The notes beneath the pieces are model-generated. The model was given only the letters and a program-made list of their open reading frames with translations. It ran no database searches and had not been told where the DNA came from. Positions 876 to 7,437 of a DNA stretch of 64,000 nt are shown piece by piece. Location: positions 1,116,001-1,180,000 of the forward strand of contig OZ218950.1 in NCBI GenBank assembly GCA_965112735.1, read 5' to 3'. Position 1 is the stretch's first letter. The number at the start of each line of letters is the position of its first letter. This DNA is from Phaeosaccion multiseriatum (Eukaryota > Protista > Ochrophyta, other classes). Position numbers and translations under genes: made by a program.

Positions 876-1727
876 CAGGTGTGTGTGTGGGGGGGCCAGT
901 TGGTATGGCAGAGACGCCACTACAGAGGCAGAGGCAACTCAGAGACAAGAGAGTGAAACTGCTCAAACTCCCTTCCCCCCCCGCCACAGCTCCTACTCTC
1001 CACCTCATCCCCCCCCCCCCCCTTCTCTCACCAGCTCGTGCTGCTGCAGGGCATTCGCCTCAGCGCTCGAGTGCTCGTCCTTCACTCCCTTGCCGTCGTC
1101 CTTCGGGGGTCTGCCTCTTCTCTTTGGCTGCTTCGGCGGCGGTACAGACGGCAGCACCGGCGGTGGCGGCAGCTCGGCACCGGGCATAGGATCATCGTCA
1201 GAGTCCACTCCGGGGCCTTGCCAGAGGATGTGGTTCTTGCTCTGCTTTGTGACTAGCCCGATACCTTCCAAAACGTTGGTGATGTCGTAGATCCGGCGCT
1301 GAGAGGCGAGTGAGGTGTGGAACGACGGAGCAAGGCGGTCGGGGGGGGGGGGGGGGGGCAGAGAGGGATTAGGAGGAGAGTGACCGCGCACCGCGTGGGG
1401 GGGTGTAAAGAGTTTCGCTTTTTGACAGCAAGAAAGGGGGGGTCAGTAGCAGTATAAGCGGCAGCGGGGTGAGGGGGAGAGAAGGGCCGGAGAGGGAGGG
1501 AGAGAAGAGAACGGTGGAGCTTGAAAAAAGGCATCGCAACAAAAGTTCCGCACCTTCTGCACACCGAGAGTGATGGCGGCCTGGTTGAGATCGAGGACGC
1601 CACCCTTGGAGCCCTTGAGCAGCCGCAGGAACCTCTTGGTCAGGATCCCAAGGCTGTTGTCAAAGCGCCCGCCCCGCTCGGAAGTGATGGGCTCAACCCC
1701 CCGAATCACCCCCTCCATAGTAGTCAT
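88..1727 (-). CDS. E2F: E2F-family transcription factor (3 exons seen: 1727-1554, 1298-1032, 474-88; probably continues past the left edge)
   Basis: The spliced protein has the E2F winged-helix signature [13 protein letters not shown]...LDLNQAA.TLGVQK|[28 protein letters not shown], then a coiled coil and a marked-box-like LYVT...[17 protein letters not shown] boundaries are in phase. Confidence 0.92.
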
Positions 1728-2046
1728 TTGCTCTCCGCTGCTTCCACTTCAGGGCAGTCGTGTCCCCTGGAGAGTGCGTGACGGCCTTCGAGTTGGTGCT
1801 GCTGCTGCTGGTATTGCTCCTCCCCTCTCTTTGCAAAACGCTTTGCCTGTCTCAAGCAGGGGCCTTTGCCCAGCGACTACTCACAGCGGCCAGAGGGGAC
1901 GCTTCAAGTGAGGAATAGAATGAGCCACGGACGGCAGGCGAGCAAGTGGAGCCCAGGCTGACAGGAGCGCTTTCCGTGAATAATGATGTGTGTAAAATTT
2001 CTCTATTGATGACCGGTTTTGGTGGGGCGAGATGCCCCACTCGGTG

Positions 2047-2106
2047 AAAGTGGGTATTTTTAGTACCCAATTTTTTTAAAAGTGGGTATTTTTAGTACAG
2101 TACCCA
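2047..2106. repeat. Subterminal 20-bp direct repeat of the Crypton, each copy with internal dyad TGGGTA..TACCCA
   Basis: AAAGTGGGTATTTTTAGTAC at 2047-2066 and 2079-2098. Confidence 0.85.
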
Positions 2107-2252
2107 ATATGGACCAGTAGCGCCCCTTCCCCCCCCCCTCCTTTTTTTGTGTGTGTGTCTGCCCCTGCTACAGGGGAAAATATACTACGCTATGATATGA
2201 CGATATAATGGTATTACCACGATAACAATGGTATTCATATTTACAGACACAC

Positions 2253-2576
2253 TTAGTGTCCGTCCTCAATCATGCATGGCTTACAGTAGTAGTCAAAATC
2301 GCCTTCCACAAAACCCTTGCTGTCGCAAAACTCGACGGTGCACATGTGGTGCACGAGGTTTCCACACGCTCTTTCGGATGGGCAGAGGAACAGCTTGACT
2401 TGCGAGGGCTTAGTACAGCCATACGAGCATGTGAAGGCCATGTCTCCCTCTCTCAAGCCGCCCAACGACGGCGCTGCTGACGCGGCAGCAGCGGCAGTAG
2501 CGGCCGCAGCGGCCGCATCAGAGGCAGCAGCAGAAGCAGCATCAGAAGCAGTACCAGTACCAGTACGCTGTTTTTT
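2253..2576 (-). CDS. PHD-like zinc-finger ORF in the -1 frame at the recombinase 3' end
   Basis: CSYGC...CPSERAC...HHMC...CKPC gives C4-H-C3 spacing. It follows an Ala/Gly/Thr linker and can be reached from the recombinase frame by a -1 shift at the A8 run (2571-2578). Confidence 0.55.
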   Translation of the reverse strand, partial: KKQRTGTGTASDAASAAASDAAAAAATAAAAASAAPSLGGLREGDMAFTCSYGCTKPSQVKLFLCPSERACGNLVHHMCTVEFCDSKGFVEGDFDYYCKPCMIEDGH

Positions 2577-5303
2577 TTGGGCCCCCCTTCCCCCACCCCT
2601 TCCTCCTCGTCCTCCTCCGGCTCCGCCTCCTCCTGTTGCAGCAGCAGCAGCAGCAGCAGCATTGCTGCTGCCACCTCCTCCTCGTCGTCCTCTGCACCGC
2701 TATCACCTCCATCCCCCTCCTTCGACTCGTCTGCACCAGTGCCACTTTCCTTCGCCCTCGCCCGCTTCGCCCGTTTTTTCGCGTCCGCCTGCTGCGCGCT
2801 CCATAAAATATACACGGTGGTCCACACCAGCTGATTGAAGCGGCGCTTGTGAGAATCAGAACGAGACTTGATGTCAAAGGCGTCTTTGACTGCGTCAAAC
2901 ATGCTTCGCGCTTCTTCAAGCGTCGGCTTGTCCTTCCAGAGCCCCTTTTCTTTCGCCGCGGATTCAATCGCACCCATCAAACAGCAAAATTTTGACATCC
3001 TTCGCTTCTCCGCCCTCCCCTGCACGTCTGCTGTCGTGAATTCTCGAAGGCGAGGAGTGCCTGTCATCCAAGCATCCCAAGCAGCGCGCACAGTGAAGCT
3101 AGGGACCTCAAAGTGCTCGGGAAGGGTATGCCACCGGCCGTTGTAGAGATACAGAGGTGGCTGATCTGCACCTGCACAAGAAGAAGAAGAGGGCGGGGCG
3201 CTGCTCGAACCCTCACCAAGGCCCAGAGTGCCTGCCTGGTGAGCCGCGAGAAGGTCGCTGAGCCCACTCTTAGAAAAGGCTGCGTCGAGGGTCGTCTGCA
3301 GGGCCCTGCTCACACCCAGACTGGTGACAGTGCCAGAGGCCTGTGCATTCTCCTCCAGAACGTCACGGATCAGCGTCTCCAAGTCGACCTTGATCGTCTG
3401 GCCCAACACCTCAAGCTTGCCGCCTAGAGAGGCCACGCTGTCCGCCACGACTTGGAATTGCCTCAGCTGCACGACGTGGGGAGGAATCCCGGTTGCAGAA
3501 ATCTCGTCCGTCTCGTCCGGATACTTCAGCACGACATGCTCTGAAAGGTCCGCCAGCAACCTTTGATCTCGGAAGAGCTGTGTCGTGAAAAGAGGGTGAT
3601 TCTCCTGAAGAGTGCTGCGCAGAAAGCCGGCGTGGTACACCACACTGGCAAGACAGAATTCAGCCACCTTCCTCAATCTCAGCGGCACGTCCCTGAAGCA
3701 GCTCACAATGGCTCCCGCGAGCACGTCTTCAATGCCCTCCTTCGCTGTGCCGTCCACCTTGAGGCGCTGAAAAAAGGGAGGAAGCAATGCAAACTCCTTC
3801 GCTGAGATGTTCGCCCCGGAGGCAGCCCGGCCCACATACTGATCTGCTGCATTGATGGGGTTGAAGTAGATGCCCTGGACGCCGGGAAGAGACCATCCCA
3901 TTCGAAGTTGCACAGCAATTGGGTTGGGAGCAGCGGACGAGCCGCTTGTGACGTGCGAGGCAGCGCCCTTGCGCCCAGAATGAGTGCCGAGGTCCTCTGG
4001 AGTCAGCCCCATGCCTTCCAAAATGGACGAGTTCGCCGCCGCCGTACGTCTGAGGAAGCCGCAATACCTATCGTACTGATTGTTGCCAGCGAACAGCGCG
4101 TTCTTCTCAAAACCAAAGCTCAGGAGGTAAACACCAAGCGCGAGGACGGGGCAGATCTCCGGCATGATTGGATTCGCGTAGACGTGGCGAGGATGTCGGG
4201 CCTTCTCTCCCAGCTGGTCGCCCTTTTGCTTCCCAAAATAGACGCAGAGCGCGTCCCCCTTCCACTCGAGATGATCGAGACAAATCTCCACACAGTTGGT
4301 GGCGCGGCACATCAGATTCCAGGAGAGAACGAGGAAGGGGTGGCCAAAGGCGCCCTGTCTGTGCCCGTTCTCACAGACTGCCGAGCTCAGCATTGCTGCG
4401 ATGTACACAAGCGAAGGAAACAGTGGCAACCAAAGACGGCGTCAGGGCTAGGAAGTGAGTGGGGGGCAGTCAATGCATCAGCCACTTGTCTCCACCCACT
4501 CCACTAGTTTCCACTGTCCACTGACTCCACACAGCTGGGAATTTACCTTTGGCAAGAGCGCGGTAGAGAGCGAACGGCATGGGAGCCTTCCCTTCTCTGA
4601 CTTCGACATTTCCCTCCTGCTTCTCTCCTGCGATCGTCCTCTTCAGCCCCTTGGTGAGCGTCGCAAGGTCGCTTTGCAATTTGCGGTGCTGCTCCTCCTG
4701 ATGGTAGTCTCTGTACAGATTGAAGAGTGCAGAGCGTTTCGACTGTGCACCGGCCTTGGATAAGCCCTTCGGCCCCTTCTTGACTTCAAGCAGCCACCCG
4801 AAGAACGCGTCGGCTGTCAGCAGATGGAACAGCAAAGGGTGCGGCGCCCGAGGTGCTTGGATCAAGTGTGCCTTCACCCGCTTCGTCCACTGCGCCTCAG
4901 CCTTCTTCTTGGCCTTTGCTTGGGCTTTCGCTGCTCTCGACACCTCAGCCGGCGTCTGCTGTGCCGCTGCAGTGGCACCACCCGCTCCGCCAGGTGCGGC
5001 GGCTGCTGCGGCTGCTGCTGCTCTCCTCTGTGCTTCCTCCTCTTCCCCATCTTCCCCGTCTTCCTCCTCTTCCCCCTCCGGTGGAGCAAATGCTGTCCTG
5101 AAGTCAGGGTCCAGAAGCTCCGGGTGCTTGCGGAAGAGGTATCGGATCAGCATCGTGGAGGCGCATGCATATCCACTTCTCGAGCGTGGGGCGATGGTGT
5201 TGTTTCGGGGGTTCTGAATCTGCTGCTGCTCTGCAGTAAGCGGTGCTTCTTCCCCCTCTGCTGCTGGTGCTTCCGGAACCGTAGCAACAGCGACGTCAGC
5301 CAT
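2453..5303 (-). CDS. Crypton-type tyrosine recombinase, 2 exons (5303-4547, 4395-2453), 899 aa
   Basis: A phase-1 GT-AG intron at 4546-4396 joins the two listed ORFs in frame. Catalytic motifs: WNLMCRA (R), KQKGDQ (K), HPRHVYANP..PEICPVLAL, GTHSGRKG (HxxR), LRMGW and GIYF (Y). The C-terminal region resembles the GCR1_C-like domain of Cryptons. Confidence 0.88.
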
Positions 5304-5623
5304 GGTATACTCTGTTCTCCTGCAAATTCACGTGGGAGATGCCCCTCCCACCACTGGCATCAGCTGTTACAGCCGGGTATCGTCCGCGCAGCCGCTGCTC
5401 CTCTTACATAGCTGCACTGTGCAAATATGCTGATGCTGTGAATGAAATAAACTCCACGTGGGGAGGGGGGGGAGAATGCCCCACAACCAAAAAATATTGG
5501 ATAAAAAACTTGAAACACGAGCATTCATGGCCCATAAAATATCCAAAACAATTATTTCGTGGGGCAGGTGCCCCACTTCACGGTACTATTAGACATACGG
5601 ACTACAGAGAACTCCTGCTATCC

Positions 5624-5639: not shown

Positions 5640-5854
5640 CCAGGGGATATCCCAGGGGTGGAAGTTTAGAGAAACCCTTGATCAAAAGTCGATATCGTAT
5701 TTTTTTTTCTGTTTTTTTCTTCTTTTCGGCTCCTCTCCTCCTCTCCTCACATTCACACATTCACACTTTCAGTTTCTTAGGTGATTCCTATTAAGTCAAT
5801 TGCCTTCCTCCTCCTCCTCCTCCTCCTCCTCCTCCCGCTTCCCCCCCCTCCCCT

Positions 5855-7437
5855 CTACCCCTTCTTCCTGGCCGTCCTCTTGCGCAGCGCAGCGTAGGCA
5901 AAGAGCCTTAACCCCACCGACATGCCCACCAACACCACAATGTTGCGCCACACCATCATATCCTCAAACCCAAACGACCTCAGCACTGTATCCCCGGGTA
6001 TAGGACACACTACGTCGCTCTCGTAAGCCCCGTCCTCGGCCATACTGCAGTCGAATTCACGCCCTTTGAACTCGTTCACAAGCATGCCTGTGTCGGGTGG
6101 AGGAGGGGAGGGGAGGAGGATGGGAGGGGATGGCAGTGGATGGAGGAGGGGATGTTGTAGGCAGTGGGTGGAGGAGGGGGTATGATGGCAGTGGATGGAA
6201 GGAGGAAAGGAAGGAAGGAAGGAAGGAAGGAAGGAAGGAAGGAAGGAAGGAAGGAAGGAAGGAAGGAAGGAAGAAAGGGAAGAAGGCAGGTGGGGGAGGG
6301 AGTCAGGGAAGGCCGTGGGGAGGACGAGCAGGACTTGTTCGGGAAATCGATTCGCCTCTCCCATCCCTCTGTCTCCCCTCCCCACGTCTCTCCTCTTCCT
6401 CTCTCTGCTCCCCCCCTCCTCCCGCACTCACCTCCATAGCCCCAATAGAGGAAGCTGCCGTATTTGAACCAGCGTATCCCCACAGGGATGCGGTCAGCCT
6501 TGAGGTAGAAGCCTGGAGAGGGGGTCACGGGATGACACCAAAAGCAAAGCAAAGCAAAGCAAAGCAAAGTAAAGGAAAGCAAAGCAAAGCAAAGTAAAGT
6601 AAAGCAAAGGAAAGGAAAGGGAAGGGAAGCAAGGTAGAAAGGGAAGAGAAGCAGGGTAGGGTAGGGAATAAAGGGGGATAGGGCGGCGAGGGAGAGGCGA
6701 AGTCAGAGTCAGTGCTGCGACATTGAATGGCCGGGGGGGGGGGGAAGACGAGGAAGGCGACAAAAGCGAATGATCGGGGAGCGTGCTCGACTTGGCCACT
6801 CTCCCTCACCCCCCACCAACCCAATCAACGCACCCACCCCACTCACGCACCCATACCAACCCACCCAACCACCCAACCACCCAACCAACCAACCAACCAA
6901 CCAACCAACCAACCAACCAACCAACCAACCAACCAACCAACCACCCAACCACCCACCCAACCAACCAACCAACCAACCAACCAACCAACCAACCAACCAA
7001 CCAACCAACCAACCAACCAACCAACCAACCAACCAACCAACCAACCAACCAACCGACCAACCAGCCAACCAACCAACCAGCCAACGCACCAAACTAACCA
7101 ACCCAACCCACCCCACCCACCCACCCACCTCCGAAGAGCAGGCTGCTTAGCACGATAACGTAGCTTATGCACGACGCCGTGGCAATGTCCGTAAAGAAGA
7201 CGCCCAGACACAGAGCCGCGCTCTGAGCCCACAAGATCTGACACATGTAGACTGCCATGAAGACTACGTAGGCCTCGGCCGTGCCTCTTAGGCCAGCGCT
7301 GAAGTACACGATGGTGCCAAAGAGGAAGGGCATGAGAAGGTAGATGAGCTGGTAGGGTTGGGGTGGGTGGGTGTGTGGGGTGGGTGGTAGGGCGGTCGGG
7401 GTGCACATGGAGAGAACACAGCAAACGACAACAGAGG

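Follow-up and report, generated by a model that had tools for sequence, protein, structure and literature searches.

The 64,000-nucleotide stretch of Phaeosaccion multiseriatum DNA analysed here (assembly GCA_965112735.1, contig OZ218950.1, positions 1,116,001 to 1,180,000 of the forward strand; hereafter the window) carries at 2003–5613 a mobile element with one long gene, read on the minus strand, for a tyrosine recombinase. Near each end of the element lies a short, perfect palindrome, or dyad, and at each terminus the dinucleotide CT. With moderate confidence, we read the element as one copy of a young, recently active CryptonS-like DNA transposon whose dyads serve as accessory docking sites for the recombinase. 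The element and its end features, in window coordinates, are:

2003–5613, gene on the minus strand: the whole element, 3,611 bp with CT at both ends, as delimited by aligned copies.
2003–2004, plus strand: left CT of the 2-bp terminal direct repeat, the gene-downstream terminus.
5612–5613, plus strand: right CT of the 2-bp terminal direct repeat, the gene-upstream terminus.
2022–2040, unstranded: strong dyad GTGGGGC-GAGAT-GCCCCAC, whose 7-bp arms enclose a 5-bp spacer; its outer edge lies 19 bp in from the gene-downstream terminus.
5559–5576, unstranded: strong dyad GTGGGGC-AGGT-GCCCCAC, with 8-bp arms and a 2-bp spacer (GG), or a 4-bp spacer with 7-bp arms; it lies 37 bp inside the gene-upstream terminus.

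A search of the 67-Mb genome assembly returned at least 32 near-full copies of the element at 98–100% identity. To define its boundaries and targets, we aligned the 28 copies with exact ends together with their flanks. Identity spans 2003–5613 and then breaks sharply into unrelated flanks, and CT stands at both termini in every copy (28/28). The mean pairwise divergence of the copies is 0.5%, and 0.2% within each of two subfamilies, and the family is therefore young. An earlier note on this DNA had described an intact element bounded by the two dyads. The aligned copies continue beyond the dyads, by 19 bp on one side and 37 bp on the other, as far as the CT; that other copies end elsewhere is an outcome the note had itself named as speaking against its proposal.

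The insertion sites share the consensus (A/T)-A-(T/A/C)-CT, with A or T at position −3, A at −2 in 25 of the 28 copies, and T, A or C at −1. This form resembles the element's own right end, GAACT, and two of the targets also run on with ATTG, as the element's left end does. Insertion amounts to the gain of the element plus one CT. Three copies (L005, L011 and L012) occupy the identical position in a diverged host repeat, ...AATAGGAATCACC.AAGAAA-CT-GAAAGTG..., and their flanks, when joined through a single CT, correspond to an unoccupied copy of the repeat found in the window:

5764–5778, minus strand: unoccupied paralogue of the L005/L011/L012 target, reading AAGAAA-CT-GAAAGTG, with a single CT.

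This empty site is paralogous, not allelic. Three insertions at one position of a host repeat suggest marked target selectivity. The unoccupied repeat copy is itself only ~150 bp from the window's element. At the very tips of the element there are no terminal inverted repeats, and the two ends share just a ~20-bp dyad. One copy, L024, departs from the others at its left junction (homologous to 2003–2010), where the left CT is followed by TTTT, not ATTG; its right CT is then followed by TTTT as well. This junction may fit a staggered exchange over CT plus four bases, with the mismatch resolved toward the target. Ordinary mutation may also have produced it, and the flanks are CT-rich simple sequence.

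The gene is made up of the following parts, where ORF denotes an open reading frame:

4547–5303, minus strand: exon 1, 757 nt; N-terminal region, whose core-binding-type motifs include the conserved RSAL..L(F/Y)R and GK.P..F.LY.
4396–4546, minus strand: intron, 151 nt, GT..AG, phase 1; splice-site anchors present in 28/28 copies.
2456–4395, minus strand: exon 2 as in the window copy, with its stop at 2453–2455; catalytic domain, then a C-terminal region shared with stramenopile relatives, then out-of-frame low-complexity sequence.
4304–4306 (R), 4223–4225 (K), 3980–3982 (H), 3971–3973 (R), 3893–3895 (W) and 3866–3868 (Y), minus strand: catalytic codons.
2253–2465, minus strand: Cys-rich (PHD-like) tail ORF, in frame with exon 2 in 20/28 copies and out of frame in the window copy.

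The spliced reading comprises 899 codons and aligns without gaps to unspliced homologues; the splice is supported because these homologues run straight through the join of exons 1 and 2. We searched, aligned and folded the two exons separately. The search with exon 2 returned 208 relatives, the best at 45% identity; among them are proteins of Phytophthora, Aphanomyces and Globisporangium as well as numerous environmental contigs, 2–4 kb long. In the homologue alignments R30, K57, H138, R141, W167 and Y176 (exon-2 numbering) occupy invariant or near-invariant columns, and the W-to-Y spacing is 9 residues, as it is in Cre. Pfam assigned no family to either exon or to the tail ORF (no reverse transcriptase, RNase H or GCR1_C match), and searches of PDB sequences with phmmer, using the catalytic part, and with a hidden Markov model of 67 homologues gave nothing meaningful. 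Exon-2 residues 1–205 yielded a predicted model with a predicted local distance difference test score (pLDDT) of 88.7 and a predicted template modelling score (pTM) of 0.87. The PDB matches that Foldseek listed for this model were all tyrosine recombinases, with probabilities of 0.96–1.00; the best was XerH (5jk0, E 1.2e-3), followed by Flp, Cre, the Tn1549 integrase, XerD and the P2 integrase, and the matches to XerH, Flp, Cre and the Tn1549 integrase reached a probability of 1.00. The catalytic motif and the predicted fold thus confirm the gene product as a tyrosine recombinase with the full catalytic set, in agreement with the earlier note's reading of the spliced 899-residue protein.

The C-terminal region that follows (exon-2 residues 195–545; 2759–3811, minus strand) was also modelled well (pLDDT 86) and is predicted to contain a long helical hairpin of ~90 residues. 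It had no convincing Foldseek match, and VIA-align 2 gave only generic long-helix matches with Z ~7. When the genome was searched with the catalytic domain, the matches came from this family only. The element holds one long gene in its 3.6 kb, and neither the ORF list nor Pfam revealed another ORF or a transposase domain.

The window copy is not fully intact, contrary to the earlier note. Compared with the near-identical copy L002, it has substitutions at 5516 and 5526 and lacks one C after 2676, and the missing C puts the Cys-rich tail out of frame. Exon 2 stays open for 712–721 codons, into the Cys-rich tail, in 20 of the 28 copies, and about 19 genes in the family appear intact. Judged against these copies, the 899-codon reading derives from a frameshift, and no programmed frameshifting need be invoked. 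The catalytic part and the conserved C-terminal part remain complete, the last ~100 residues are translated low-complexity sequence, and the protein of the window copy probably lacks the Cys-rich tail. Because it retains both ends, the window copy could still be mobilised by intact copies.

These features place the element among the Cryptons, as the earlier note had proposed. It has a single tyrosine-recombinase gene with the full catalytic set, no reverse transcriptase, and a short terminal direct repeat; it has neither long terminal repeats nor split direct repeats, unlike DIRS, Ngaro and PAT elements; and it occurs in many copies with unrelated flanks and with a single-CT empty site. CryptonS elements are known from oomycetes and a diatom; they share a conserved C-terminal region, and their terminal repeats are 5–6 bp long and mostly TATGG (Kojima and Jurka 2011, PMC3212892). 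The element is like them in having one tyrosine-recombinase gene without a GCR1_C domain or reverse transcriptase, and short terminal direct repeats without inverted repeats at the very tips. Its protein aligns over the full length, long C-terminal region included, with proteins of Phytophthora, Aphanomyces and Globisporangium at 37–41% identity. Exon 2 aligns to the last residues of these oomycete homologues, including ATGIPPH, LEERA, PP.R and RR..QL.W; the homologues may belong to the CryptonS families of Repbase.

The element also differs from CryptonS. Its terminal repeat is 2 bp (CT, or A-N-CT) instead of 5–6 bp of mostly TATGG type, and only the CT is invariant. Three related metagenomic families have repeats of 3–6 bp (TAA(TT), TCATCA and ACATA), and an examination of two oomycete homologues for TATGG termini gave no clear result. 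In addition, the consensus protein carries an acidic low-complexity stretch and the Cys-rich tail, and all 18 aligned homologues (18/18) end before these. We therefore describe the element as a new family of a known Crypton kind, set apart by its 2-bp repeat and Cys-rich tail.

The strong dyads stand in direct register, each followed on the plus strand by T(TCA)CGGT, and they are accompanied by weaker dyads, all as the earlier note had reported:

2047–2108, plus strand: two 20-nt direct repeats (2047–2066 and 2079–2098), each followed by AGTACCCAAT, with weaker dyads TGGGTA...TACCCA.
5332–5351, unstranded: degenerate dyad GTGGGAG-N6-CTCCCAC, located 29 bp before the ATG and overlapping a CACGTG word.
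5458–5484, unstranded: degenerate, weaker dyad GTGGGG-N15-CCCCAC.

Each end of the element thus has one strong and two weaker dyads of the GTGGG...CCCAC type, and the right arm of the 5458–5484 dyad pairs imperfectly with the left arm of the dyad at 5559 (27-nt arms, 70% complementary). The strong-dyad pattern matched twice in the window against 0.00 matches expected (100 shuffles), and 68 times in the 67-Mb genome against once for a reversed control. About 65 of the 68 genomic matches fall within copies of the element, and the matches are almost always left/right pairs ~3.5 kb apart. The heptamer GCCCCAC is found four times within the terminal 130 bp, as against a single occurrence in the 3.3-kb interior, and the similarity between the two ends exceeds that in all of 1000 shuffles. 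The strong dyads are very probably functional end sequences, and their distribution suggests that they are probably docking sites for the element's own recombinase. In the 310 bp of upstream non-coding sequence (5304–5613), nine of the ten substitutions that separate the subfamilies fall within 5416–5577; those at 5550, 5553 and 5577 adjoin the arms of the 5559–5576 dyad and none lies inside those arms, in numbers too small to prove constraint.

We compared this arrangement with that of four related families whose ends could be delimited from the contigs that encode them and whose proteins are 33–40% identical to the element's. The comparison leaves out the closest relatives (49% and 42% identity) and the single-locus L046, L047, L048, L059 and L064. 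The four families are:

P0006 family, 39% identity: many different flanks; ends in TAA(TT).
P0086 family, 33% identity: partly from Tara metagenomes; ends in TCATCA.
P0114 family, 36% identity: ends in ACATA.
P0085 family, 40% identity: from two NCBI assemblies; ends in a 1–2-bp repeat.

The end sequences of these families are unrelated to those of the window element and to one another. Each family nonetheless has a 7-mer of its own, present in both orientations, with three to five occurrences close to the ends and no more than one in the interior, and in a sixth family with undelimited ends (P0025) the motif is likewise confined to sequence outside the gene. The repeated unit in the relatives is often a single half-site, not a hairpin-forming dyad. 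In the window, P0006, P0086 and P0114 families, no more than 3 of 1000 shuffles attained the similarity seen between the two ends. Measured from the terminus, the downstream-end site has its outer edge at 19 bp in the window family, 20 bp in P0006, 21 bp in P0086 and 22 bp in P0114, while the 3′ non-coding length varies from 250 to 720 bp across the same four; in all of them a dyad lies 37–68 bp inside the gene-upstream end. The spacing is fixed to the DNA terminus and not to the gene, which argues for a role in recombination, not in expression. The single-copy relative L046, on a 167-kb metagenomic contig, has dyads of the GATGTA-/-TACATC type at 3624–3646 and 6197–6220, one on each side of the recombinase gene, which share TTT-N-GATGT and ACATC-N-TAC flanks.

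Contigs from two of the related families also show the right end of the element running directly into its left end, with a single terminal repeat between them. The P0006 family accounts for four of these contigs (L055, L056, L057 and L058) and the P0086 family for two (L068 and L069). L055, of 2,672 bp, has an exact 127-bp terminal overlap and so offers a 2,545-bp circular assembly path. The junction contigs could be excised circles or head-to-tail tandem copies. In three relatives the joined site has inverted arms of 13–14 bp around a centre of 18–22 bp that holds the crossover motif. Tentatively, and as a proposal a little short of even likelihood, we suggest that CryptonS-type transposons as a group share a conserved, hitherto undescribed end architecture, in which a family-specific 7–8-bp half-site lies ~20 bp inside the downstream terminus and a dyad ~40–65 bp inside the upstream terminus, so that joining of the ends on a circle would bring these together with the crossover motif as a full recombination site. 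If this holds, the window family, with its many near-identical copies, exact ends and about 19 apparently intact genes, would yield the first eukaryotic Crypton recombinase with a defined site, and the relatives' junction contigs would be the first sequence-level sign of Crypton circles.

We infer that strand exchange takes place at the CT and not inside the dyads, because the copies end at CT, the empty paralogue has one CT, and the 67-Mb assembly contains neither of the two possible hybrid dyads. The recombinase would bind the dyads, probably as dimers, and the dyads would mark and align the ends in an arm-type or accessory role, outside the crossover. It would then synapse the two ends and exchange strands at or beside the CT, releasing a circle of ~3,609 bp and leaving one CT behind at the donor. 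Re-insertion of the circle, by the same reaction run backwards, might follow at a new CT site with partial resemblance to its right end. A 2026 preprint (10.64898/2026.09.21.753150) still treats the circular intermediate of Cryptons as a hypothesis. For the window family excision as a circle remains a model, to which the joined-end contigs of the two related families lend indirect support.

Several observations weigh against the reading of the dyads as recombinase docking sites beside a CT crossover. The overlap used by tyrosine recombinases is usually 6–8 bp, longer than the 2-bp CT. No head-to-tail junction of the window family is present in the host assembly. The junction-proximal arms of this family match at only 8 of 14 positions and its strong dyads would be 54 bp apart, and the family shares the principle of the relatives' joined site, not its exact geometry. 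Among the relatives, the downstream site of the P0085 family is 5 bp from the end, not ~20 bp, and the end-to-end similarity of P0086 is significant only if both orientations are allowed. Structure searches with the C-terminal region recognised no DNA-binding fold by which the dyads might be read. The 28 aligned copies have no variant column within 2022–2040, and a single copy (L009) has G to A at 5559, but the copies are too alike for conservation within the family to count as support. Finally, the 2-bp terminal repeat is shorter than the 4–6 bp reported for Cryptons (PMC3212892).

We weighed four other explanations against it. The earlier note had regarded the dyads as lox-like cores, with exchange in their spacers and a mobile unit of 2022–5576, and both the palindromes in direct register at the two ends and the Cre-like fold of the enzyme speak for such a model. 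The element does resemble Cre/loxP and Flp/FRT in its catalytic fold, its R-K-H-R-W-Y set and its palindromic sites, which bind protein in those systems and putatively do so here. In lox and FRT, however, crossover occurs in the palindrome's 8-bp spacer between two identical sites, whereas the element's inferred crossover lies 19 and 37 bp outside its palindromes, and all 28 copies share those further bases before they diverge. The spacers, GAGAT and AGGT, differ in sequence and length; arms of 7–8 bp with spacers of 2–5 bp are unlike the 13-bp arms and 8-bp spacer of lox, and more generally the dyads lack the arms of ~11–13 bp, spacers of 6–8 bp and identical partners of lox and FRT cores. 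An empty site bearing one hybrid dyad had been anticipated; the empty paralogue restores a single CT, and neither hybrid dyad is found in 67 Mb. We consider the lox-like model very improbable, and the dyads are better termed subterminal accessory sites flanking a CT crossover. The dyads might instead be expression signals (promoter elements, 3′-end or terminator signals, or RNA hairpins of the untranslated regions) read by host factors and unrelated to recombination. One precedes the ATG by 255 bp and the other follows the consensus stop by 213 bp, positions that would suit this role, and both weaker upstream dyads overlap words of the CACGTG type, a frequent kind of promoter element. Yet the same motif stands at both ends, the downstream site keeps its 19–22 bp from the terminus in four families while its distance from the stop codon varies, and the motifs are wholly different between families, as would be expected of an element-encoded reader and not of a shared host factor. 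A role purely in expression is therefore unlikely.

It has also to be asked whether the dyads act as structural DNA, forming cruciforms or hairpins for circle replication or copy-number gain and playing no part in end recognition. Their arms are GC-rich and perfect, with short spacers, and the active Cryptons of Chlamydomonas gained copies despite clean excision, by what was called 'a complex mode of transposition' (PMC9977147). Against this, the ORF list and Pfam show no replication protein encoded by the element, arms of 7–8 bp are short for stable cruciforms, and the single half-sites often found as the repeated unit in relatives would not form them; we regard this explanation as quite improbable. 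The remaining alternative concerns the CT, which might be nothing more than a 2-bp target-site duplication left by a staggered cut, with the recombinase either not the mobiliser or acting by a non-canonical route. A 2-bp repeat is below any overlap known for tyrosine recombinases, and sequence alone cannot separate duplication from crossover. The element has, however, no other ORF or transposase domain and no terminal inverted repeats at its very ends, and its target is always CT, like its own end. The latter is a signature of site-specific recombination, seen also in CryptonF-1_cRei, with its end CACCG and target CAYCG (PMC9977147). We give the duplication model little credence.

CryptonF-1_cRei of Chlamydomonas is the first Crypton seen to move, with a clean excision that leaves the target only (Lopez-Cortegano et al. 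2023, PMC9977147). As in that element, the end of the window element resembles its target and a short motif flanks the insertion, and the empty single-CT paralogue fits clean excision. The two differ in group (F as against S-like) and in motif length (the 5-bp CACCG/CAYCG as against 2–4 bp), and movement was seen in Chlamydomonas, whereas the window family is known from sequence alone.

By analogy, the proposed arrangement is also like that of the integrases of lambda, Tn916/Tn1549 and CTnDOT (IntDOT), in which a circle is excised, the core needs little or no homology, and extra protein-binding sites lie tens of bp away on both arms. IntDOT of CTnDOT requires just 2 bp of homology at the first exchange, and the Tn1549 integrase bound to circular-intermediate DNA is among the structural matches of the catalytic domain. 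Unlike these bacterial systems, the element is eukaryotic and intron-bearing, with no separate excisionase gene and no recognisable arm-binding domain, and its accessory sites are palindromes where theirs are direct arm repeats; beyond the catalytic fold, the likeness is one of analogy.

Knowledge of Cryptons goes back to 2003, but not of their mode of recombination; a moving Crypton was first observed in 2023 (PMC9977147). Kojima and Jurka found no conserved non-coding sequence and did not mention subterminal motif arrays (PMC3212892), and our full-text literature search found no paper describing subterminal sites in Cryptons. The present family supplies exact ends, a target rule, candidate docking sites with a spacing common to relatives, and many apparently intact genes, so that what a Crypton recombinase recognises becomes directly testable at the bench. 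Builders of genome-engineering tools, too, would have an interest in a compact eukaryotic recombinase whose sites are defined. For annotation, the limits of the element are 2003–5613, and the window copy should be recorded with a frameshifted tail.

Elsewhere in the genome, a truncated copy of ~2.9 kb (to the equivalent of window position 4929) lies at G000:C1:4957777-4960703, 1.7 kb before the full copy L005. It is oriented like L005 and could reflect an insertion that was aborted or rearranged. A diverged fragment at G000:C1:2722864-2723552 retains the left terminus and the tail region at 77–83% identity, and the exact dyad pattern is not among the genome matches there. In the window itself, the ORF at 1443–1727 (minus strand), just left of the element, encodes an E2F/DP winged-helix domain (Pfam E 9.4e-8). 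The element sits ~275 bp upstream of the ATG of this ORF, likely in its promoter region, a position that recalls the gene-proximal insertion bias reported for an active Crypton of Chlamydomonas.

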